64,000 nt of DNA, from sequence record PP695294.1; one strand, given 5' to 3'. Positions 4,747 through 62,400 of this stretch are shown in pieces. Under the pieces are notes generated by a model, which was given only the letters and a program-made list of their open reading frames with translations, did no database searches and was not told where the DNA came from. The position numbers were made by a program, and so were the translations under genes. Numbering within the stretch: the stretch's first letter is position 1; each line of letters opens with the position of its first letter.

Positions 4747-6024
4747 ATGGCAAACTTTGTAAAAAGTAAACTCGCCCGCGAGTCCGTTGAAGCTACCGGC
4801 GACGTAATCGACGGTCTGAGCAACGTTGAACCGGCAGAAGAGAACATCGACGTTCAGCTGGCAGAAGTTGCGTCTATCGACGGTCAGCTGGAACAGCTCG
4901 ATGGTGACCAGGAAACCCTGGCTGCTGATACCGAGCGTACCGAAGCTGCTATCGACGCTGCTGACGAAAAAATCGAAAACGGTGAAGAGATGCCTGAAGA
5001 AGCCATCGCTCACACCGAAGTGGCGCAGGAATCTATCCGTAAGCGTTGGGCTATCGATCGTACCAAACTGGCACGCGAATCTTATCGTCGCGGCCGTGGC
5101 ATGACCAAAGCAGCTCAGGAAGGCTGGAAAGAAACCCTGAAAGATCTGTTCGAACGCTTCGTTGAACTGTGTAAAGCAGTTATCGCGAAAGCGAAAGAGC
5201 TGAAACTGAAGTACATCAACGTTGGTAAGTCCGCGCAGAAACGTGCGAAAGCTTACCAGGAGATGCTGCGTAAGCTCGGCAAACAGAAGAAAGAAAACAT
5301 TTCTGGTGGCTTTATTAGCAAACTGTCTATCGAAGGTGAATTCGATGTGGCCAACTCTATCGCTATCGCGAAAGAGCTGACCGGCGGTAAAGCGAAAGAT
5401 GCCATCAACAAGCTGTCCTCTCAGGCGGCTGACTCTGCTGTAGCGATCACCAAAACTTCAGACGGTACCGCAACCGCTGCTAAAGGCGCTGTTGACGTTG
5501 CCCTGTTTGGTACCGCTGCGAAGAAACTGCGCGCACTGCCGCAATTCGAAGACGGCGAAGGCGGTCAGAAAGTTCTGGCACTGCCAGGCAACGCCTATGT
5601 ACAGACCGGCAGCAAAACTCTGGCAGGCGGTCAGGAATTCACCGCAGTGGCCTTCCTGTCGACGGGTGACGTTTCTGAAACGAAAGAAATCGCTACTCCG
5701 GCTATTTCTGCACTGGCATCTGCTGCGTCTGCCCTGGACGTTATCGGTAAAGGCTTCGAGAAAGTCCTGCAAGACTTCCGCAGCTACGACGCTGACGTTG
5801 AGAAACTGGAAGAGGCTGCTGCCAAAGCTGCTGCCGCTCTGAAAAAATCCAACGACGAAGGCGAGTGGGAAGCGCTGCGTAATGCACGCACTGCGGCTGA
5901 CCAGGCTGTGCGTAACTACCAGACTCTGAACCGTGCTGTGGCTCACGTTGGTAACACTGTTATCAGCGGCCTGAACGGCTACATCGGTGCTGGTATTGGC
6001 GCGTACGAAAAGTCTAAAGCTTAA
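4747..6024 (+). CDS. Abundant inner-head/ejection protein, paralog 1 (SPN3US gp53-like)
   Basis: Acidic propeptide with ARES/AQES/AQE sites; Ala-rich body; strong codon bias. Confidence 0.75.
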   Translation: MANFVKSKLARESVEATGDVIDGLSNVEPAEENIDVQLAEVASIDGQLEQLDGDQETLAADTERTEAAIDAADEKIENGEEMPEEAIAHTEVAQESIRKRWAIDRTKLARESYRRGRGMTKAAQEGWKETLKDLFERFVELCKAVIAKAKELKLKYINVGKSAQKRAKAYQEMLRKLGKQKKENISGGFISKLSIEGEFDVANSIAIAKELTGGKAKDAINKLSSQAADSAVAITKTSDGTATAAKGAVDVALFGTAAKKLRALPQFEDGEGGQKVLALPGNAYVQTGSKTLAGGQEFTAVAFLSTGDVSETKEIATPAISALASAASALDVIGKGFEKVLQDFRSYDADVEKLEEAAAKAAAALKKSNDEGEWEALRNARTAADQAVRNYQTLNRAVAHVGNTVISGLNGYIGAGIGAYEKSKA

Positions 6025-6101
6025 TCCGCTTTACGTACTGAACGTCAGTTGACAAATCATTAATGGCGGTACACGGCGTACCGCCTAGAGGATAGAAAAA
6101 G

Positions 6102-7361
6102 ATGGCAAACTTTGTAAAAAGTAAACTCGCTCGTGAATCTGTCGAAGGCGCAGGCACTGTCGTTCCAGATGGTATCGAGCTGCCGGCTGAGTCCGTGGAA
6201 GGTACTCTGGCTGACATCGAGCATGACACCAAACCGATCGACCAGCTGGACGCAGAAGCAGACGTGCTGGCAGAAGACGGTGACGAAACTGATGCACAGC
6301 TGGATGCAGTTGATGCTGCTGAAGCCGCCGCTGACGGCGAAGGCGAAGATGGCGAAGAGCCAATGGAAGTGGAAGAAGATATGCCTGACGAAGCTGCTGA
6401 GCAGCTGGACGTTGCGCAGGAATCTATCCGTAAGCGTTGGGCATTTGATCACCGCGTAAGCGTTGCGCAGGAATCTTACGGCGCACGTAAACGCCGTCAG
6501 GTTGCTCGCGAATCACTGTGGGACGACATCAAAGCGTTCCTGCAGCGTATCTTCGACTGGCTGAAAGAACAAGGCCGTAAAATCAAAGATCGCTGGCTCA
6601 AGTTCAGCAACCAGGGTAAATCCATTCAGGCACGCGCTAAGAAATATGACGCGGCTCTGCGTGGCCTGGGCAAGCAGAAGAAAGACACCATTAGCGGTGG
6701 GTTCATTAAGAACCTGACCACCGGTGGTAAGTTTGTTGGTGACGACATCAATGCACTGAAAGGTGTTCTGTCTACTATCGGCAGCATCTACGGCGAGCAG
6801 GAAGCAGTGGTCAAAGATGCAACCCGCATGGTCAGCTCAGTTGAAGGCGGCAAACTGAACAGCGGCTTCGCAGCAGCGGTTAACAAAGCCACTGCAGGCA
6901 AAGCGGGCGAAGTTCAACTGCTGGGTAACCAGATCGGTAAAGCTGACGTGAAAGTGAACGGGGATGACCTGGAAGCTTCCTTCACCGTTATCGATGCTGA
7001 AGGCAGCGTAGAAAAATCTGTTTCTACTCCGTCTGCTCAGACGCTGTCTTCTCTGGTTGCGTTCTTCAACCAGCTGGGTAAAGCAGTCGAAGAGAACGTG
7101 AAAGCGTACCACAAAAATAACCAGGCTCAAGAATCGTACGAGCGGGCTATTGAGGCGCTGCTGAAACGTATCGACGGCGTGAAGATCGACGACAACGCTG
7201 AACTGACTTCCAACGTCCGTGTTGCACGTCGTGCAATCACCGTTGCGAACCAGTACATCTCCTGGACCGAACGTTGCGTTGCAACTGGCCAGAAAAACCT
7301 GATCGCCGGCGTTAACGGCTACATCAGCGCTGGTATCGGTGCGTATGAAAAGTCTAAGTAA
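6102..7361 (+). CDS. Abundant inner-head/ejection protein, paralog 2 (SPN3US gp54-like)
   Basis: Same N-terminus MANFVKSKLARESVE, AQESIRKRWA and near-identical C-terminus NGYI.AGIGAYEKSK as 4747-6024. Confidence 0.75.
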   Translation: MANFVKSKLARESVEGAGTVVPDGIELPAESVEGTLADIEHDTKPIDQLDAEADVLAEDGDETDAQLDAVDAAEAAADGEGEDGEEPMEVEEDMPDEAAEQLDVAQESIRKRWAFDHRVSVAQESYGARKRRQVARESLWDDIKAFLQRIFDWLKEQGRKIKDRWLKFSNQGKSIQARAKKYDAALRGLGKQKKDTISGGFIKNLTTGGKFVGDDINALKGVLSTIGSIYGEQEAVVKDATRMVSSVEGGKLNSGFAAAVNKATAGKAGEVQLLGNQIGKADVKVNGDDLEASFTVIDAEGSVEKSVSTPSAQTLSSLVAFFNQLGKAVEENVKAYHKNNQAQESYERAIEALLKRIDGVKIDDNAELTSNVRVARRAITVANQYISWTERCVATGQKNLIAGVNGYISAGIGAYEKSK

Positions 7362-52583: not shown

Positions 52584-53036
52584 ATGTTTCAATGTTCAGT
52601 CGTCAATGATGCGGAATTGGCCGCGTACAAGCAGCGCACAATCCGGGCGCTGGATGCTGAAAAACCAGTCGATGTTAAAACGCGTGCAATCATTAGGGCA
52701 TTTAGCGAATGGCCGAATATCGCAACCGTTTGGGCATTCACGGGAGAAGTTCGCAAAGACGGAGACAAGCTTCGTACACGTAGACACCACAGCTTAACAT
52801 TTGTGGCAACCGAGGCGGGTCTTAAAGACATTAATCATTTATTAGAAGGATGGCAGCCGCACGAATACGGGAAACGTTTTCAGTTAAACTTTACTTGGCT
52901 GCGTCAAGAAGGCAACGCGAATCTCTGTTATCCAAGCTGGACGTTTAGACTCAACTATCGACCTGACCCGGATGTGATGGAAAGAGTGATGGAGCACTGG
53001 CTCGCACTCGCAATTTTTACAGAACATAACCATTAA
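52584..53036 (+). CDS. TYW3-like fold protein, degenerate motif
   Basis: VDVKTRAII...ATVWAFTGE aligns with 53065. Confidence 0.45.
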   Translation: MFQCSVVNDAELAAYKQRTIRALDAEKPVDVKTRAIIRAFSEWPNIATVWAFTGEVRKDGDKLRTRRHHSLTFVATEAGLKDINHLLEGWQPHEYGKRFQLNFTWLRQEGNANLCYPSWTFRLNYRPDPDVMERVMEHWLALAIFTEHNH

Positions 53037-53064: not shown

Positions 53065-53535
53065 ATGCCAGTTTTATACGGTGGTGTGGATCTGAAAGTT
53101 TTGGATCGGTTTAAACTACGGGCATCCGAAGCGCTCGTAAACGGTTGGGTCGAGCGTGGGGTACGGGATGCGTGTGAAGTTATTTGCCGTTACCCCGGCG
53201 CGACGACAATGTGGTCATGTCATGGACACGGACCATATTCTAAAAAGAACTCGCCAGGGGAGTTCCATGTAGTGTTTGTTCTTGGTGTTGGCTTTGAGCA
53301 CAAAGCGCATGAGCTAGTTGCTGAGTTAATGAAAGCGGATATTCCACCGTTGTGGGATTTATCCATGGCGAGACTCATGTACCCTGATGATGATTTCGTT
53401 TATGACCTCAGCGAAATCACCCTGAAAAACACGTATAACGCGTGGAAGATAACGTATCGTTATCTGCACACCGAACAATCCCTTCGTGAAATTCGTAAAG
53501 TATTCCACACAGTTTGCAAAAAGGTTTTTAACTAA
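53065..53535 (+). CDS. TYW3-like fold protein
   Basis: VERGVRDAC...TTMWSCHGH resembles the TYW3 N-terminal TTSSCSGR motif. Confidence 0.55.
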   Translation: MPVLYGGVDLKVLDRFKLRASEALVNGWVERGVRDACEVICRYPGATTMWSCHGHGPYSKKNSPGEFHVVFVLGVGFEHKAHELVAELMKADIPPLWDLSMARLMYPDDDFVYDLSEITLKNTYNAWKITYRYLHTEQSLREIRKVFHTVCKKVFN

Positions 53536-54233
53536 TGGCTAAGCAAAAGAAACCCCGTAACAAAAAGTATAACCCGAAAGTTGCCACAGAACGTACGGCA
53601 CACACCGTCGCTGAAAACGCTCTGAATCGTATCACGTTTATCGGTAGTTCGATTCGTCGCCTCGGGCCGTACGCGGGCCGTGGTTTTCACTTTACAGCAA
53701 GCCCACGTATTCGTGCTATCGCCACAGATATGTTAGTCGGTGGGCTGTTCGACCAACCGCGACCATGGCATCTTTGGGTGATGCACCTCACTGAACTCGA
53801 CACCGGTGAAATTGTAACAGAAACCGCAGTTGCCACACTTGACGATTATACTTTGGCGGACTTCTGTGAACATGCTGAGGAGTTAGTTAAATCGTTACGC
53901 CCTGAACAGGAAGAGGGGAAGTATTTCGGTTATGCATTTGTGGCTGCACCGAACGAGCGATACGACTTCAAAGCGGAAGAAGACCAGCTCATTGAAAACT
54001 TCATGCATTCTGGACTACTTGATACGTCGTTACATCTGTCGGAAGAACAGCAGTTCGTTAGTCGTGCAGAAATGGCAAAGTTACTTGTTGGTTATACTCG
54101 GAAGTTTGACGTGACCGTTGAACATGTCAAAGAAGTACCAGAGATTGTGAGCAAGAAAGACGAGGTGGTGCTTCCGGTTGACGAGGTTGTCAGTAAAGTA
54201 GCGACTGCGATAGGGGCAACGGGGGATTACTGA
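53535..54233 (+). CDS. Hypothetical protein with basic N-terminus
   Basis: MAKQKKPRNKKYNPKVATE; 232 aa. Confidence 0.7.
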   Translation: MAKQKKPRNKKYNPKVATERTAHTVAENALNRITFIGSSIRRLGPYAGRGFHFTASPRIRAIATDMLVGGLFDQPRPWHLWVMHLTELDTGEIVTETAVATLDDYTLADFCEHAEELVKSLRPEQEEGKYFGYAFVAAPNERYDFKAEEDQLIENFMHSGLLDTSLHLSEEQQFVSRAEMAKLLVGYTRKFDVTVEHVKEVPEIVSKKDEVVLPVDEVVSKVATAIGATGDY

Positions 54234-54442
54234 TGAATCTACGTTGGCCGATTGCAGCTGCTGTGTTGTTCTGTATTTATATCGCCGTCAGTACCAGTAC
54301 CCGCACTGCAGAACGTCGCGAGACCGCAACCAGTACGTTCAGAATGTGTATTGATCGAGTAGACCCGAACAATAGCACTTATCCTGACGCGGTGAACGCG
54401 TGTCGCAAAGCGGTTGCTGAGATATTGAAAGAGGAAAAATAA
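54233..54442 (+). CDS. Small exported/membrane protein with Cys pair
   Basis: Hydrophobic N-terminus; C-x17-C. Confidence 0.65.
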   Translation: MNLRWPIAAAVLFCIYIAVSTSTRTAERRETATSTFRMCIDRVDPNNSTYPDAVNACRKAVAEILKEEK

Positions 54443-56202
54443 TGGAAAACCTTACGCCGATTGAGATAGTGGCGCTATTCGACCGTTACGTATACGGACA
54501 AACGCAGGCAAAGAAAATGCTGGCGATTGCGCTACGTAATCGATATCGTGCCAACAAACTCAACGTAGTGGACCGTATGTCGGTCCACAAACAGAACCTT
54601 TTAATAGAAGGTCCAACAGGCACGGGTAAAACGGCGTTGATGCGGGTACTGAAAACTAAATTCGGTTTACCCGTACTGGAACTCGACATGACCGCGTTTA
54701 CAGAATCGGGCTACGTAGGCCGGGAAGTTACATCAATCGGCAAGGACTTAGCCGACTTAGCGCGTTCTGTCGAATTGCCCGACTGGTATATCGAACTGCG
54801 TACCAAACGTCGTGTCGAGTCGGAAGTAGACGGTAATCGTCTTACTCGAGAAGAGTGGGAGCGTGAATCCCGCAAGGAAGTTGAACGTGAACTAGACGAG
54901 CGCGCCGCTGAGCGCCAGCTGCGGTATCAAGCTAAACGTGAACACACCGAACTATTACGGCGTCAGGGTATACTCGATCCGAAGGAGTTGTACGAAGAAT
55001 ACCAAGACATCTATTGTCTTCGCGCGTTTATGGTTGGCTATTGCCGTCAACATAATTTAACCTACGAAGACTTCGATATTTATTCTGTTGCGCTCGGTGG
55101 TCGTACTGTGCAGGAATGGATAGATAAGATGTCGGAAATCGCAAGGAGTCTGCTCGGTGTCTCGTCAATTTCTGAACTGTTAAATAGTGAAGAACTTGAA
55201 AGTCAAGTCGATGAGTTAATGGGTGGCGATATACCGGGCACGATTGGGTATATGGGTGAGTTTATGTCGCTGATGGCTTTAGGCGAACAGATTGACTTAT
55301 ACGTTGATGCTGGTCAAAAGTTGATGTCGAATAACCTTCCGCTCTCATGTGCCGATGGCTCAGATTTCTACGATTTGTTCGACACGTTTAACGGCGACGA
55401 CGAGGACGCCGAGCCGGTGGGCATTAATTGGTTCCCGATCGACGCTGCAGCGTTTACTATTCGCATGTTGTCTCGTTTGGAAGATCCTGAGAAGTGGTGT
55501 CGTTGGTGGGATGACGTGTTCGAAGGTTCTCCAGAATTTACCAAATACGCTGATGAACGACTCTGGCATTACGAGATACCTGAAACAGTTGCACCAGAAA
55601 AAGAAACAGTCAGCCGCAAAGACCTCAAGAAACTACCCAACTGTAATGGGCATGATTTCGTTGAGAACTTTGCGGTGGTGTTCCTGGATGAGTTTGACAA
55701 ACTTATCGAGGTTGACACGCAACACTCTGCACGTGTATCCCGTAGTGGTGTGCAGCGTAGCTTGTTGAAAATGGTTGAAGGAGGTATTTATCATGGCGTT
55801 GACACAACCAATGTGCTTTTTGTCGCTGCTGGGTCGTTTGCTCAAGCGCCTGTTTCTAAACTCATGGCAGAACTCCAGGGACGTTTTCCGTTAAGGGCGA
55901 AAATGTCTTCGCTGGATACCGAGGCACTGATTGCTATCTGTAAGTTGGATAACAGTGAGTTCCACGGCATGATTAAGTTGTTGAAAACCGAAGGGGTGGA
56001 AACGCAGTACGACATGGACACCTATACGTTCATCGCTGAGAAAACAATGGAAGCCAATGCTGTAGAGAACCTTGGTGCTCGTCGACTGGCGGATATTGTT
56101 CATCAGATCTTCTTACCTGCGTCTTACGACTCTTCGAAATATAAGCAATACGACATACGTGGTGAAACGCTGCGTGGTCACGCTTGGACAGAGAAAGCAT
56201 AG
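54442..56202 (+). CDS. hslU: HslU-like AAA+ ATPase
   Basis: GPTGTGKT, FTESGYVG, FLDEFDKL, VSRSGVQRSLL, ELQGRFP, ENLGARRL. Confidence 0.9.
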   Translation: MENLTPIEIVALFDRYVYGQTQAKKMLAIALRNRYRANKLNVVDRMSVHKQNLLIEGPTGTGKTALMRVLKTKFGLPVLELDMTAFTESGYVGREVTSIGKDLADLARSVELPDWYIELRTKRRVESEVDGNRLTREEWERESRKEVERELDERAAERQLRYQAKREHTELLRRQGILDPKELYEEYQDIYCLRAFMVGYCRQHNLTYEDFDIYSVALGGRTVQEWIDKMSEIARSLLGVSSISELLNSEELESQVDELMGGDIPGTIGYMGEFMSLMALGEQIDLYVDAGQKLMSNNLPLSCADGSDFYDLFDTFNGDDEDAEPVGINWFPIDAAAFTIRMLSRLEDPEKWCRWWDDVFEGSPEFTKYADERLWHYEIPETVAPEKETVSRKDLKKLPNCNGHDFVENFAVVFLDEFDKLIEVDTQHSARVSRSGVQRSLLKMVEGGIYHGVDTTNVLFVAAGSFAQAPVSKLMAELQGRFPLRAKMSSLDTEALIAICKLDNSEFHGMIKLLKTEGVETQYDMDTYTFIAEKTMEANAVENLGARRLADIVHQIFLPASYDSSKYKQYDIRGETLRGHAWTEKA

Positions 56203-56292
56203 TGCTAATAGCGCCGCATGTGCGCTATTGACCCTAGGTTACATGGATTTAATTTTAACCCTACGTTATCAACTTATACGCACGGTGAAACA

Positions 56293-56625
56293 ATGAAGAA
56301 AGTTTTAGTTCTGTTAGGCGCACTCGTTGCGCCTATGGTTGCCCACGCTGCGGACAAACCACTCTTACTCGACCAGGATGTTTACGAACGTGTATTCCTG
56401 GAATGCGCTAAAACCTTTAACGGACCACAGAAGACAACCTTTAACGATTTGGACGAAGCGTTAGAGGTCTGCCGTGACACTGCAAAAGAAATCGCGGTAC
56501 GTCAAGGAACCCTCAAAATGGCGGTGGGAAGCAACTGGGAAGAAGTGCAGGTGATGGAAAAACCGGGTTACATGGTCGACCTGAACGCTAAGTTGATGCG
56601 TGAAGAAAAACAGAAACAAAAGTGA
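56293..56625 (+). CDS. Exported protein with Cys pair
   Basis: MKKVLVLLGALVAPMVAHA signal peptide; C-x21-C. Confidence 0.7.
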   Translation: MKKVLVLLGALVAPMVAHAADKPLLLDQDVYERVFLECAKTFNGPQKTTFNDLDEALEVCRDTAKEIAVRQGTLKMAVGSNWEEVQVMEKPGYMVDLNAKLMREEKQKQK

Positions 56626-56633
56626 GGTAAAGG

Positions 56634-57641
56634 ATGACGAAGCTCGTTTCGTTTTCAGCAGGGTTGGATTCCACCTGGATAATGTATCAGCTGTTGTGCA
56701 AAGCACCGGCCAATGAAGCGCGACATGTCCGTCCTGCATATTTCTCCATGTGGAATGGAGGTAACGCGAACTTCATGGAAATTCTTTGTAGTGTGGCCAT
56801 TGTTGAACGGTTAATGGACAGATACCACGCACAAACCGATCGTGTTACATGGGCGGTGCTCGGGGAAGAGAACTTTCCGCCTGTCGTTAGCGCCGGCTAC
56901 GCTAACGGCTGGTCGCCTCTGGTTCAGCAAGGCAATGTTGTTAACGGTCTCGCTAAACTGATGTGCGACATTACACGCAAACAGCACCACGCCTATGCAG
57001 TTGTTGGTTGGAATAAGCTAGATGCGTTGGAGAATAGTCTAGAGCTGGGAGATTGGACATTAGACGAGTACGCCCGCTTAAAGAGCCTTTATAGCGAACT
57101 GATGTATTTCCAAGATCATGCCGGTCGCGTTCCACCGCTTCTAACACCTGCGTGGGATAAAGAGAAACTGGAAATGTGGCAGGAGTTGCCGGAAGACATT
57201 CGTAGATTGGTGCAGGTCAGTAACTACAACAACTACGAATTCGCGATAGACCGTGAGAATAACATGCTCATCGTTTATGCCCATCCGTCGGCAAAGTCGC
57301 AGAATTATCGTAGTCTTGGTATTACACCGTCTGTGGGATGGGAGATTAAAATCAACGATGCTTACAGACGGGTATGGTGCTCTGCTCTTGGTGGTGCTAT
57401 TTCTGCTATGGGTTTGGACGTACCGACTTTTGCTAACTTTAAGGACCCGAAAAGAAATCAGACAACCTTTACGGTAACTGAAGATACTGAAAGACTATTT
57501 ATCACGTCATTTACAGCAGAAGAGTGGTGCGAATATGCACCGCATTTTAAAGCGCTTCAGGAGAAAGAAAAAGAGAGAGCGAAAAATGCCAAAGCAAGTA
57601 AAGCTGTGGACGCTCCAACTGGCGAAGTGGCGGATAGCTGA
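56634..57641 (+). CDS. QueC-like PP-loop (adenine nucleotide alpha hydrolase) protein
   Basis: LVSFSAGLDST; LLTPAWDKEKLEMWQELP. Confidence 0.7.
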   Translation: MTKLVSFSAGLDSTWIMYQLLCKAPANEARHVRPAYFSMWNGGNANFMEILCSVAIVERLMDRYHAQTDRVTWAVLGEENFPPVVSAGYANGWSPLVQQGNVVNGLAKLMCDITRKQHHAYAVVGWNKLDALENSLELGDWTLDEYARLKSLYSELMYFQDHAGRVPPLLTPAWDKEKLEMWQELPEDIRRLVQVSNYNNYEFAIDRENNMLIVYAHPSAKSQNYRSLGITPSVGWEIKINDAYRRVWCSALGGAISAMGLDVPTFANFKDPKRNQTTFTVTEDTERLFITSFTAEEWCEYAPHFKALQEKEKERAKNAKASKAVDAPTGEVADS

Positions 57642-57969
57642 AAAACGGAATTTGCCAAAGCTGGATATAACAGTTAAGTCGGGGTTGAAATATTTGGCAC
57701 CCGACTGGGACTTTCTGATGGACTACAAGAAGTCTGACAAAGGCCCCGACGCAGAAGCTGCGTATACCAAACGCTACCTGCAGAAACTTAGTCGGTTGTT
57801 TGATGAAGACACTGATAAGTTGATAGAGATTCTCCGCCAGGGCGAGGTCGTACTAATGTGCTATTGCCCACCGGGGAAATTCTGTCATCGCCACTTGCTA
57901 GTTTCTTACCTTATTGAAATCGGTGAGTGGTTCGGTTATGAAGTAATTTACATGGGCGAGTTATCGTAA
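57586..57969 (+). CDS. DUF488-like protein
   Basis: LAPDWDFLMDYKK, YTKRYL, LMCYCPPGKFCHRHLL; ATG 57586. Confidence 0.7.
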   Translation: MPKQVKLWTLQLAKWRIAEKRNLPKLDITVKSGLKYLAPDWDFLMDYKKSDKGPDAEAAYTKRYLQKLSRLFDEDTDKLIEILRQGEVVLMCYCPPGKFCHRHLLVSYLIEIGEWFGYEVIYMGELS

Positions 57970-57980
57970 GGAGAGTCCTC

Positions 57981-58376
57981 GTGAAATTGATTATGCCTAA
58001 AACCGTTCCTAATCAGGATATGGTTACGACTACACTGTTTTCTGAATCATTACGTAACTCTGTACGTCAGACCGCTTCACGTCTAGACGTGGCAGTTGAA
58101 GAACTCGACCCTGAAGTCTTCATGAAGTATGCGTTTATTGCAGAAGGTTACGCGATCGCCCTGAGTTATGCGCGGTATGTCGATGACGTGACAGAAGCTA
58201 AACGTTATTTAGAAGGCTGTTGTCAAGTTTTCCGTGAAGAAATCACCGAGATGGAGATGGTTGACCGCGGCTTACCTGAATTTGTAAAGGTGGGTTACGA
58301 TAAGCTGTTGCAATCCATCGCGGATGAGATCAAACGTCGCGGGTTAACTGTGGTGCACAGCGCTACACTGCACTAA
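57981..58376 (+). CDS. Hypothetical protein
   Basis: 131 aa, GTG start, SD AAGGAG. Confidence 0.75.
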   Translation: MKLIMPKTVPNQDMVTTTLFSESLRNSVRQTASRLDVAVEELDPEVFMKYAFIAEGYAIALSYARYVDDVTEAKRYLEGCCQVFREEITEMEMVDRGLPEFVKVGYDKLLQSIADEIKRRGLTVVHSATLH

Positions 58377-58389
58377 CACCGTACGAGTA

Positions 58390-58431
58390 GGCTACCACAC
58401 GATCATATGTGTGGTAGCTTATTTTTTTTTG
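58390..58431 (+). terminator. Intrinsic terminator
   Basis: GGCTACCACAC-8nt-GTGTGGTAGCT plus T tract. Confidence 0.85.
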
Positions 58432-58446
58432 TTTCTGGAGGCGTTA

Positions 58447-58980
58447 ATGGCAGACCGCTATCAGCCCGACCTAACACTCTCGTCGAAAGCGCTTGTCGTG
58501 GCGTTAATTAATCACGATAACGGCTTGTCATTATCGCCTGACGAGATTGTGATAAGCGGAGTAGGGCCAATCGACTTAGGTGTTGAAAGTGCCCGTACCT
58601 CGCAAGCGTACATTGCGAAAGCACGTAAACCTAACGGCAAGAAAGTTACCGTCTATTACGACCGTCTAGCTGCTAATAAGATTATCGACCCGCAAGGACC
58701 GATACTGGTTACTGTAGCTCCCGGCGACACCTATGCTGATTTAGCGACAGTTGTAAACCAGTTGTGCGGTTTAAACTTGTCACGTGAGGACATCTCGACA
58801 GGGGTTATTACACCAACAAACGAGCCGTTGATTGCACCGATGAGTGACGATTCACCGGCTTGGACGGCTACCTTTACATTCACGGCGTTTAATGAAAAAG
58901 AAGCTGTGGCAAGTCTGGATGAAGAAACTGTTTTATGCATCGGTGATGATGCAGTGTTAACCTACGGAGACGATGCATAA
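58447..58980 (+). CDS. Virion protein, paralog of 33786/38612
   Basis: PDLTLSSKALVVALIN...VYYDRL; ATG 58447 with SD GGAGG. Confidence 0.6.
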   Translation: MADRYQPDLTLSSKALVVALINHDNGLSLSPDEIVISGVGPIDLGVESARTSQAYIAKARKPNGKKVTVYYDRLAANKIIDPQGPILVTVAPGDTYADLATVVNQLCGLNLSREDISTGVITPTNEPLIAPMSDDSPAWTATFTFTAFNEKEAVASLDEETVLCIGDDAVLTYGDDA

Positions 58981-59450
58981 TGGCAACTGTAGTCAAAAAG
59001 AAACGTTTGCATGAACTCGATTCTTACAACGGTGATAAGTCGAGCGCGGTAGCGCTTATCAGCGTTGATGAAAAGGAGTACAAACTTCCTCTCAGTGAAA
59101 TCGGCGGCGGGGCAGATGCAAACCCTATCCAAAACTTATCCGGTGCTGACGGTGTCGTTGAAATAGATCCCAATATTGCGGACGACTTCATTATCCGTTT
59201 AGGTGACCCCACCACTGCGCTTTCTATCACACCTATTACCGACCCGGTTCCGGGTACGCGATATGAGTTATTACTGACGCTACGTCAGGGTACCGGTGCA
59301 AACAAAATCACCTGGCCGGCTTCGGTTAAATGGCCTAACGGTGCAGAACCTCCGTTATCGTACACGCTAGACGCCGAGGATGTGTTGTCTTTGTCATCTA
59401 CGGATGGCGGCACAACCTGGAAAGGGGCCATTTGCGGAACAGGATACTAA
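58980..59450 (+). CDS. Tail-fibre-associated protein
   Basis: LRQGTGANKITWPASVKWPNG...DGGTTW beta-sandwich pattern; coupled to next gene. Confidence 0.6.
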   Translation: MATVVKKKRLHELDSYNGDKSSAVALISVDEKEYKLPLSEIGGGADANPIQNLSGADGVVEIDPNIADDFIIRLGDPTTALSITPITDPVPGTRYELLLTLRQGTGANKITWPASVKWPNGAEPPLSYTLDAEDVLSLSSTDGGTTWKGAICGTGY

Positions 59451-59453
59451 GCC

Positions 59454-62400
59454 ATGCGCAAATTTAAAATCTCTGCTAAACGACATGCGCTGAACTACGC
59501 ACTGTCGCTGGCTTACGGACATCAGGACTTTGTTCGTCGAAACACCGGCTTAACTAACGACGCCCACAATGACCATTATCTGATTAACCCAGAAGGGGTG
59601 CTATCTAATAACCGACATTTCATTGCTGACTCCATGGCTGTGTATCAACCTAATGGTGACGCCACCACAGAAGGTCAATCGTTGCTGATTATTGGCTACT
59701 GTCACATGTACATTGCTACCAAAAACCAGATGTGGTTAGATGCGGCGATTCATGCATGGGAAGCGTACGCTACCTACTATTACGCAGGTCAGGCCATTCC
59801 CGATTCACCACAACGTTGGATTTGTAACTGGCTAGTTAACGGTAAAGAGCCAGTGCTGGCAGACTATCCGGTGCATCCGACCGAGCCAACCCACGGTGGT
59901 TATAAGTGTGTACCGGTAACGTTTACGAACGGGCGTTGCCAGATACCCCAAGGCGCACCATTCTTTGGTGAATATCTGAACAATTTCTTTTCTGCGCATC
60001 GTGGCCATCCTACTTGGGGTGCGGTTAATGCCGACGTACAGAAAATTAAGGAATCGGAAGACGGGTTAATTGACTGGTCTAAAGTCCCTGATTACTTAAT
60101 CGTCAATCCAGAGAAACCTTACGATGTAAAAGCGTGGGTGGACTGGAACACGATGCTAAACGACCCAACCGGATATACCCCAATATGGGGCGGTTCTACC
60201 TCGAAAGGTCCGCGGTACGAACCTGACTGGTTTGTTGTGTGGACGGGTGAGAAGGTTCAAGACGGCGATGTCATCGAATCCGGTTTACCTGATGCCCAGA
60301 AAGGAACCGTACAATTAAAGGACACTAGTATTAACGGTGTATATTTGATTAACTACGCTTCCCAGGTACCTGTAGAGCACGGCGGATATTTGTTTGACCG
60401 CAATGAGCCGTGGCACAACCGTCCGGTTCATACCCCGTTAAAAGGGTCTGTTAACCAGATGGGTAACGCGGCAGATGCGGAAGTGTGGTTTATTGATGCC
60501 TGTTATCTGCTCTGGCGTATCACAGGTGAACCGCGCTATAAAGCCGCATTAGACTCCGTGTTCTATACAGCGCACGAGTACACGTATATCGATGCGAAGG
60601 ACAAGTTTTTCCGTCGTTCTAAGCTAGCCGAAACACCATTTACAGATGGTATCTCGTACGACTATAAATACCCCAGCACCGTTGAGGTCGCTTACGGTCG
60701 TGATGAAAATGGTGATATTGTGTTCCGTTCTGAGGAAGCTGTGCAGAACTTTATGGAACAGCAAGCCGTGCGTTTCAGGATAAACAGTCAATCGAAGTTA
60801 CGTGTGACGTATGGCGGTGTTTGCGACAACGGTGATGCACTTGCGTGTAAAGTGATGGTGGATATTAACCCCGTCAAAGCGGATACTGAAGAAGTAAACT
60901 GGTACGGCTGTACGCTTCCGGGATCAACATCGATGGAAGTAGAACAGCATGACATCGATTTAGGGCATCTGGCCAGAATGACCAATCCGGCCAACGGCGA
61001 AGATTACATCATTGCCGATGCACGAGCATGTTCGGACTACGGTGGGTGTACGTGGCAGGAGAAGTTTGAGAACAACATTTACGATGGTCGTTCAGGCACA
61101 ATCGTAGAAGCGTTATTCCCGAACGACGATGCGGGTTTCATTATCGGTTTCTGGTTAACCGATGCCGGTGTTGCACCCCCACAGTCAATTGTCTATCGTG
61201 CCGATGCTGATTTCAACTTCCGTTTCGAAGATACCGACAAGTGGCGTTGGTGGTGGATGTTGCCCGCGACTAACGGGGAATGGAAACAGGTTATTATTCG
61301 CCCTGAAGACGCAACACTCTCGGGCTATCAACCTGACCACGATACCGACGTCGAACCAAAACCGGCTGCGCCAAATTATACAACTATCGATCAGGTAACC
61401 ATACTGCCCGATTCGGCTGTGGAGAATGCGCACTTTAGCTGGTATTGCGTAAACGATGTTCCGCCACTGTTTAATGGAGACGATGGTTGGACGTTAACGT
61501 TCCGTATTGTAATTCGGGGAGGTTCTGCATTTACGGGTAAGGTGGGCGATTGTACGATAAAAGATTACCGTCTTGACTCGCTCGCGTATTGTCCAGGTAC
61601 GATACCGTTCTCGAACATTTATTCGGAAGGAACGTATCAGCTAGGTGCATGGCACGGGATGCCGTATCCCGGCTATCAGTATCCGTTTATGTACACCATA
61701 CACACCGATGATCGCTACAAAGACTGGCTCTTAAATCAGATTCGGTTTATGCACGATTCACAAACCAACTACCAAACGCAGATAGGTGAGTTAGGTCCAG
61801 GTTGTGCGGCGTATATTTGGAACCGTTGGGATAACTACTCTTACGGCCCGGCAGATACGTGGACAACGTTCCATTGGGGCGATGGACATCCGTGGGCAGG
61901 TTATCAGGCGCGCGCGTATAACGCCGCTGCGCGTTGTTGGTACGAATTAGTTGTGCGTGGTAAAGAGGTTCCACCTGAACTAGTAGTGTACGTTGAAAAT
62001 TGGGCTAAGTGGCTCGTAGGGTTCTTAGACCGCTTTGACAACCACACCCCGAATGAATTCCCTACGGCACCAAATAAACCGGTATGGGTAGAGAATGATT
62101 TCACAGCACATATGTGTGCGCTCTGGATAGCAGGCAGCGCTTATGCGGCAATGGCCGGCTGTACAGTGGAAGGGTTGAACCGTATTATGGATATGGGGAT
62201 GAAGGAGATGGGTGACAACTTCACCGTCACCGACATTCCAGGAAAAGCCATTAACGGTGCCTGGTCTCCATGGGCAAATCCTACCACGGATAACGGTCAG
62301 GCTTTTGGGTTTTATACTGGAGAAGCGATGCGCGCAATCGGGTTGTATCTCCTCTATAAAGAACATGGTGCAGGGCATGATATCTATCACGACTTGGCAA

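Follow-up and report, generated by a model that had tools for sequence, protein, structure and literature searches.

A divergent, zinc-less PP-loop protein of the QueC superfamily encoded by SPN3US-type jumbo phages

The DNA analysed here (the window, 64,000 nucleotides) comes from Salmonella phage 1252 (PP695294.1, 243,229 bp), with which it is identical position by position, and at positions 56634–57641 of the + strand it holds an open reading frame (ORF) for a 335-residue protein that begins MTKLVSFSAGLDST. Phage 1252 is an SPN3US-type, phiKZ-like jumbo phage; the window is 96–98% identical to SPN3US and other Seoulvirus jumbo phages. The protein corresponds to SPN3US_0119 (98.8% identity) and is called gp119 below; the gene that overlaps its end corresponds to SPN3US_0120 (gp120) and encodes a DUF488 protein. 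Both are annotated as hypothetical, except in RefSeq, where gp120 is a DUF488 family protein, and neither is mentioned in the part of the SPN3US literature that was searched. We find that gp119 is a true but remote relative of QueC within the QueC/Cap9 branch of the PP-loop enzymes, and that its family is a real, conserved and divergent branch of a known kind of enzyme. The best explanation of the whole, which we hold with moderate confidence, is a stand-alone, zinc-less PP-loop enzyme of this branch that uses ATP to activate a substrate other than 7-carboxy-7-deazaguanine (CDG).

The AlphaFold2 model of gp119, built on a 29-member alignment, has a predicted local distance difference test score (pLDDT) of 89.3 and a predicted template modelling score (pTM) of 0.89. 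It has the Rossmann-like α/β fold, with the SAGLDS loop following strand 1, that defines membership of the PP-loop superfamily. The original prediction had called the protein QueC-like and proposed a structural comparison with QueC, QatC and Cap9 as a check. Against 48,161 PDB representatives (VIA-align) the top match to the model is Cap9 (9nto_B; Z = 13.8, r.m.s.d. of 2.8 Å, 174/181 residues; r.m.s.d. is root-mean-square deviation). QueC (3bl5) gives Z = 11.8 with an r.m.s.d. of 3.4 over 179 aligned residues, and ThiI (Z = 11.1), YcfA (Z = 10.4) and TilS (Z = 9.8) are found lower; the structural matches all fall on residues 1–230. Foldseek was run in addition, and its best matches are PP-loop enzymes without exception.

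At the sequence level gp119 matches phrog_8825, a family of unknown function (E = 7.5e-140), and has zero matches to Pfam (E ≤ 1), NCBIfam or the PADLOC families. Hidden Markov model (HMM) searches with the gp119 family gave similarity limited to the PP-loop. In the profile comparison (hhalign), E. coli QueC aligns with the gp119 family profile with a probability of 95.8% (E = 6.7e-9) over 152 columns, covering gp119 residues 1–183; the same comparison gives 22 columns for TilS and 53 for ThiI. Because the QueC alignment exceeds the other two, the term ‘QueC-like’ is warranted if it refers to the QueC/Cap9 branch. As a superfamily-level description, with Cap9 and QueC as the nearest folds, it stands; as a name for a canonical QueC it does not. 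The Pfam QueC model PF06508 gives sub-threshold scores for nine of the 29 family members (best E = 0.0012), and the language-model neighbours of gp119 in the ESM Atlas are viral clusters in which ∼20% of the members match Pfam QueC.

A remoter phage relative, P0084, scores E = 1.2e-11 against the gp119 family profile and keeps CGQCVPC (CxxCxxC) at the place of the QueC zinc motif; on this sequence evidence it links the gp119 family with zinc-bearing viral QueC-like proteins. P0084 has 365 residues and is encoded on an 88-kb Logan contig, in a replication module with a Macro-domain gene and an SNF2 helicase on one side and a family-A DNA polymerase on the other; RecA, a 5'-3' exonuclease, DnaB and ribonucleotide reductase are also encoded in its surroundings. 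No deazaguanine genes are visible in the 17 kb shown of this locus.

The catalytic core of gp119 comprises residues 1–240 (56634–57353), as delimited by invariant columns, structural matches and hhalign. Its PP-loop, S8-A-G-L-D-S13 (56655–56672), the putative ATP pyrophosphate-binding loop, aligns with the SGGxDS of TilS, QueC, Cap9, LarE and a nitrile synthetase; across the 29 members it reads [ST][GAS]G[LVI][DE]S, with G10 and S13 invariant, so the SAGLDS loop first noticed is confirmed. The further core motifs are V97-Q-Q-G-N101, G125-W-N-K-x-D130, G139-D140, T171-P...K178.E..W182 and K221...Y225...G229. Canonical QueC is described by SGGxDS, YxQxHxxE, VPxRN, YPDC, K165 and a zinc motif (Libby et al., 2026; PMC13329287), and its Y35A, R99A, Y131A and Y189A substitutions each abolish queuosine formation (PMC13329287). 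In the hhalign alignment gp119 keeps the PP-loop, E49 (E42 of QueC), N101 (N100), G125...D130, D140 (the Asp of YPDC) and TP...K178.E..W182 (K165). The last of these had been read as ‘TP..K.E’; the element is real, with P172 and K178 invariant and aligned with the TP...K.E of QueC, and only the notation was approximate, the actual residues being T171-P-A-W-D-K-E-K178-L-E (TPAWDKEKLE).

The residues on the other side of the pocket have changed. In place of YxQxHxxE, Y35 has become M39, the Gln N41 and the His G43, and only E49 is kept; in place of VPxRN, V97-Q-Q-G-N101 has G100 where QueC has R99; in place of YPDC, L138-G-D-W141 has L138 where QueC has Y131, and only the Asp is kept. The C(x)8CxxCxxC zinc motif, which holds Y189, is absent, and a Cys-free segment with K221 is found instead. 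The lack of a C-terminal Cys cluster, already remarked on for this one protein, extends to its relatives: none of the five Cys residues of gp119 is conserved or clustered, whether 11 or 29 members are compared. The family has acquired invariants of its own, namely Q98, Q99, W126 and K221, with Y225 and G229 nearly invariant. Taken together, the aligned residues indicate that the ATP side has been retained and the substrate (CDG) side rebuilt. Beyond the core lies an extension of ∼95 residues (241–335; 57354–57585 up to the overlap with the next gene), with two short strands and a long K/E-rich helix (residues 295–325); it varies between lineages and is not conserved family-wide, and the alignment decays past about column 300.

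The pathway that an ordinary QueC would serve is also missing. No queD, queE, folE or dpdA had been seen in the window, and genes of this kind elsewhere in the genome would have pointed to the ordinary pathway. Model searches of the whole 243,229-bp genome gave no matches to QueC (PF06508), even at E = 10, and none to TGT/DpdA (PF01702), QueD/PTPS (PF01242), FolE (PF01227) or QueE (TIGR04322); the same searches gave matches in control genomes. The earlier view that this is not ordinary 7-deazaguanine synthesis is thus well supported, as the pathway partners, the residues essential for preQ0 and the zinc motif are all lacking.

The gp119 family is small, and all of its detected members come from phiKZ-like jumbo phages or from contigs of jumbo-phage type. 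Searched exhaustively with phmmer, 1.84 billion representatives yielded 26 proteins, and tblastn found homologues in 64 of 50,697 phage records, belonging to Salmonella, Erwinia, Escherichia and Proteus jumbo phages and one Aeromonas jumbo phage; at E = 1e-5 the same search gave no homologue in Pseudomonas phages. A related-locus search with a narrow family alignment yielded four loci. The phiKZ-type prohead protease, Peptidase_S80, is present in all four of the complete genomes tested that carry a gp119 homologue.

As a PP-loop ATP pyrophosphatase, gp119 is probably competent for catalysis. Its PP-loop would hold ATP, with which the enzyme would adenylate a carboxylate or carbonyl oxygen on some molecule other than CDG, as related enzymes do, and a nitrogen (possibly sulfur) nucleophile would then displace AMP. 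The favoured substrate is a compound resembling a nucleobase or nucleotide, or a base within nucleic acid, because of the new invariants Q98, Q99, W126, K221 and Y225 and because of the genes for replication and nucleotide metabolism that frequently neighbour the distant members: RNase H lies directly upstream in two cases, a DNA ligase is nearby, thymidylate synthase lies within 4 kb in two cases and the order Macro-SNF2-[QueC-like]-PolA occurs once. The protein would work as a stand-alone accessory enzyme. The retained ATP-side residues would also accommodate one of the earlier proposals, an ATP-dependent ligase that acts on a protein or nucleotide.

The overlapping gene was described at the outset as one for a Cys/His-motif protein sharing 56 nt with gp119, and this description is borne out. 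The gene (annotated at 57586–57969, + strand) encodes 127 residues that match Pfam PF22751, DUF488-N3a, at 46.1 bits against a cut-off of 27 (E = 7e-12). Its motif C92-Y-C94-PPGK-F-C100-H-R102 (57859–57891) is strictly maintained, with C92, C94, F99, C100, H101 and R102 invariant among 18 homologues. The model of this protein has a pLDDT of 95.8 and its structural matches are weak: an exopolyphosphatase-like protein (Z = 5.3), the RapZ C-terminal domain (Z = 5.0), the CbiL methyltransferase (Z = 5.0) and dual-specificity phosphatases (Z of ∼4). DUF4326, which is related to DUF488, is placed in the rhodanese-phosphatase superfamily (PMC9503650), and the RapZ-C and phosphatase matches of the model fit that placement. 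They would also agree with a clade of RapZ-C, DUF488 and DUF4326, which Burroughs and Aravind are reported to have defined in 2023.

The overlap itself (57586–57641, 56 nt, + strand) is read in two frames, DUF488 being in the +1 frame relative to gp119; an in-frame ATG upstream at 57535 would lengthen it to 107 nt. In frame 0 it codes for the gp119 tail VDAPTGEVADS and in frame +1 for the start and first strand of the DUF488 protein, MPKQVKLWTLQLAKWR. The tail is disordered in the model of gp119, the final two ten-residue blocks having pLDDT values of 66 and then 47. VDAPTGEVA is the other-frame reading of the conserved LWTLQLAKWR of DUF488, and members without an overlapping DUF488 gene, such as the Wellington-type proteins, have no such tail. 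The conserved tail is most simply explained, from the two reading frames, as an overprinting by-product of the DUF488 start and not as a functional motif; a role for ‘GEVA’ as a docking motif or protease site was considered and rejected in favour of this explanation. Erwinia phages ChrisDB and Caitlin keep the overlapping arrangement. Their annotated DUF488 starts (MAKWR... at 4875–5363 of the ChrisDB locus, MQMAKWR... at 5854–6339 of the Caitlin locus) omit the first strand, and IWTVQ and LWTVQ, respectively, are open upstream of them; as the conserved IWTVQMAKWR precedes the annotated start, the true Erwinia starts probably lie further 5' and the overlap is probably longer than annotated.

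This arrangement invites a reading in which gp119 and gp120 make up a module of two enzymes: the PP-loop protein would adenylate a base or the end of a nucleic acid and the Cys-rich DUF488 protein, of the rhodanese-phosphatase superfamily, would deliver or remove a group. This could be persulfide sulfur, in the manner of the ThiI rhodanese domain, or a phosphate carried by a ribose or DNA end. The pairing of a PP-loop with a rhodanese domain is established in E. coli ThiI, and the PP-loop thiolases ThiI, YcfA, NcsA, TtuA and LarE are among the structural neighbours of gp119. The invariance of C92, C94, C100, H101 and R102 in DUF488 also speaks for such a module, as does the translationally coupled overlap, which is found in Seoulvirus and in ChrisDB and Caitlin, with the PP-loop proteins of these two Erwinia phages only ∼35% identical to gp119. 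The distribution of the two genes, however, speaks against it. DUF488-N3a homologues occur in 290 phage records, compared with 64 for the PP-loop gene, and their holders include phiKZ (PHIKZ151), PhiPA3 and Vibrio, Serratia and Klebsiella jumbo phages, with the Pseudomonas phages among them having no PP-loop homologue by tblastn at E = 1e-5. Conversely, Aeromonas phage AhC3_1 has the PP-loop gene and DUF488-N3a nowhere in its genome, the two genes are ∼115 kb apart in pEa_SNUABM_37 and they are separated by 2.5–2.8 kb in the Kwan-type phages. In HMM scans of the retrieved loci, the two genes are neighbours in Seoulvirus and the Erwinia phages ChrisDB and Caitlin alone; a Kwan-like contig has a gap of 2.5 kb between them, five loci have DUF488 but no PP-loop gene and several the reverse. 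The members known to lie next to DUF488 group in one half of a maximum-likelihood tree, a half that is weakly supported (74/76). Because the two genes occur apart in many phages, the pairing implied by the original prediction is weak, and an obligate pair is rejected, each gene occurring without the other; we consider the module doubtful. A 190-residue ORF that overlaps DUF488 at one locus (L013) is not a remnant of the PP-loop gene. A +1 frameshift fusion of gp119 with the DUF488 protein was likewise set aside, as no such fusion was found in nature and most phages encode DUF488 as a separate protein, which leaves it at most a faint chance.

The top structural match suggests another reading, in which gp119 is a ligase like Cap9 or QatC that conjugates a nucleobase-like acid to a protein N-terminus, or is a counter-defence factor that interferes with host Qat or type IV CBASS (cyclic-oligonucleotide-based antiphage signalling system) by competing for substrate or target. 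Besides the Cap9 match (Z = 13.8), protein deazaguanylation is known to be carried out by QueC-family enzymes (PMC13329287), and the variable C-terminal extension could be a docking site for a lineage-specific protein. Against this, the PADLOC Cap9 and QatC models give no match to gp119, which lacks the Cap9 signature, the QatC motifs and the zinc site. In an all-against-all BLASTP comparison of the small proteins flanking the distant homologues there were no other shared families, and hence no conserved neighbouring target gene. Membership of gp119 in either Cap9 or QatC is rejected, since the PADLOC match, the motifs and the neighbours are all lacking. The suggestion that gp119 is a decoy against QueC-based defence has no support either: the PADLOC models do not match, and with the CDG-binding residues gone, sequestration of CDG is unlikely. 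We find this group of explanations improbable.

The loss of several QueC catalytic residues, together with universal stress protein folds among the lower structural matches (Z of 6–7), could mean that gp119 is a non-catalytic ATP-binding or structural protein on a PP-loop fold, comparable to a universal stress protein. The PP-loop Gly and Ser, D130 and K178 are nevertheless invariant, and Q98, Q99 and K221 are new invariants, among members that are 18–25% identical. As these invariants persist at such identities, the residue pattern fits an active site that is conserved and not decayed, and we judge a purely structural role to be quite unlikely. An ordinary QueC whose preQ0 would serve to modify DNA or tRNA, the host taking over the steps that the phage lacks, is given practically no credence: the automatic Joint Genome Institute (JGI) name of one homologue, 7-cyano-7-deazaguanine synthase, and the Pfam QueC matches among the ESM Atlas neighbours speak for it, but it is already contradicted by the loss of the essential Y35, R99 and Y131 and of the zinc motif, by the silence of PF06508 throughout the genome and by the lack of partners, including a TGT or DpdA to insert the base.

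The stand-alone, zinc-less enzyme that activates a substrate other than CDG remains our preferred explanation, and several points weigh against it. The proposed chemistry is taken from relatives, and the relative nearest in structure, Cap9, acts on a protein and not on a nucleotide. The second position of the PP-loop is Ala in the Seoulvirus clade and Gly in most members. The context evidence is weak because jumbo-phage genes scatter and some of the distant loci may be one lineage. The long DUF488 overlap is shared by Salmonella and Erwinia phages with PP-loop proteins only ∼35% identical, and its retention could reflect a coupled function of gp119 and DUF488. Finally, a search for expression found the sequence only in contigs of wastewater metagenomes and metatranscriptomes, which cannot show transcription, and no transcriptome of an infection turned up.

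QueC was long regarded as a single-purpose enzyme; recent work shows that bacteria have put its scaffold to other use, namely the deazaguanylation of proteins in immunity by Qat and type IV CBASS. The gp119 family is the QueC scaffold in phages, with a more radical change: the zinc site, the deazaguanine-binding residues and the pathway have all gone, and a new set of pocket residues is strictly conserved despite the losses. A bolder idea, which we think unlikely but state for its interest, is a third repurposing of the QueC scaffold, by nucleus-forming jumbo phages, as a zinc-less adenylator that installs an undescribed modification on a nucleotide, on nucleic acid of phage or host, or on a protein. 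In the enterobacterial lineage such an enzyme might cooperate with the Cys-dependent DUF488 protein to shield phage molecules that come into contact with the cytoplasm, by amidation, thiolation or end-capping for instance. Once found, the substrate of gp119 could reveal new PP-loop chemistry or a new modification of nucleus-forming jumbo phages, and the function would explain a gene that is conserved in SPN3US-type phages, which are candidates for Salmonella control. Should the substrate prove mundane, the value would be limited to improved annotation.

All of the features around the two genes described here are on the + strand. A Shine–Dalgarno-like sequence, GAGG...AAGG (56624–56633), was read 5' of the gp119 start and overlaps the stop codon of the upstream gene. 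That gene (56293–56625) is the homologue of SPN3US gp118 and matches phrog_10627; a longer reading frame is open from 56218. Its signal-peptide-like start, MKKVLVLLGALVAPMVAHA, suggests that the product is exported. Downstream, a strong terminator-like hairpin with a 17-bp stem and a T-run (58385–58424), found by consensus scan only, sits 3' of the next gene (57981–58376), with which the non-structural genes end, and 5' of a virion/tail block that starts at 58447; gp119 and gp120 probably belong to a unit that has its 3' end at this hairpin. The scan for σ70 promoters is blind to promoters used by the phage's own RNA polymerases.

Further upstream, 54442–56202 encodes a 586-residue HslU/ClpX-like AAA+ ATPase (TIGR00390 hslU, E = 8e-62; phrog_4339) in the position of SPN3US gp117. 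SPN3US gp117 is a 161-residue diverged paralogue of the prohead protease (PMC5694885). The phage 1252 genome has a single Peptidase_S80 match, and in Erwinia phage ChrisDB the ATPase is present together with, and close to, a protease-like fragment; the ATPase and the protease-like gene may be an HslUV-like pair that has been differentially lost among Seoulviruses. The ORFs at 52584–53036 and 53065–53535 both match phrog_7413 (E = 3e-59 and 6e-56, respectively) and are a tandem pair of paralogues. In the SPFM phages (LR535901–LR535920) the region like window positions 54000–59500 aligns in several assemblies as many short pieces (up to 40), and the gp119 and gp120 proteins of these records are truncated with odd scores; this fragmentation looks like sequence or assembly error and not biology.

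Among known systems, the overlapping DUF488 gene, widely conserved in jumbo phages, shares the CYC...FCHR motif with PHIKZ151 of phiKZ and the other DUF488-N3a proteins, and the window protein itself is nothing unusual; the only thing that sets it apart is the overlap with a PP-loop gene, which is confined to some enterobacterial jumbo phages. ThiI, YcfA, TilS, LarE and the GMP and NAD synthetases have the same fold as gp119 (Z of 8–11) and the same PP-loop, but for ThiI and TilS the profile similarity to gp119 ends after the PP-loop region, and the THUMP, rhodanese and amidotransferase domains of the other PP-loop enzymes are not present in gp119. QueC differs in that gp119 falls below its Pfam threshold and has the additional variable C-terminal extension.

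A further comparison is with the repurposed bacterial members of the QueC family. QatC has its own set of motifs plus zinc (PMC13329287), and it shows the same evolutionary pattern as gp119, in that the substrate site of a QueC scaffold was remodelled and extensions were added; its motifs and variant zinc motif are not seen in gp119, as far as a comparison short of residue-by-residue alignment goes, and gp119 does not have qatA (ATPase), qatB and qatD (TatD) as neighbours. Cap9 retains the canonical QueC substrate motifs and the zinc motif and is encoded beside its CD-NTase target (PMC13329287). Both Cap9 and QatC have an adjacent target protein, whereas no conserved adjacent target is seen for gp119, the neighbours of which are phage genes of unknown function and not a CD-NTase. 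Cap9 is still the best structural match, and gp119, although it has neither the QueC substrate motifs nor the zinc motif, is like Cap9 a pared-down form of the QueC fold.

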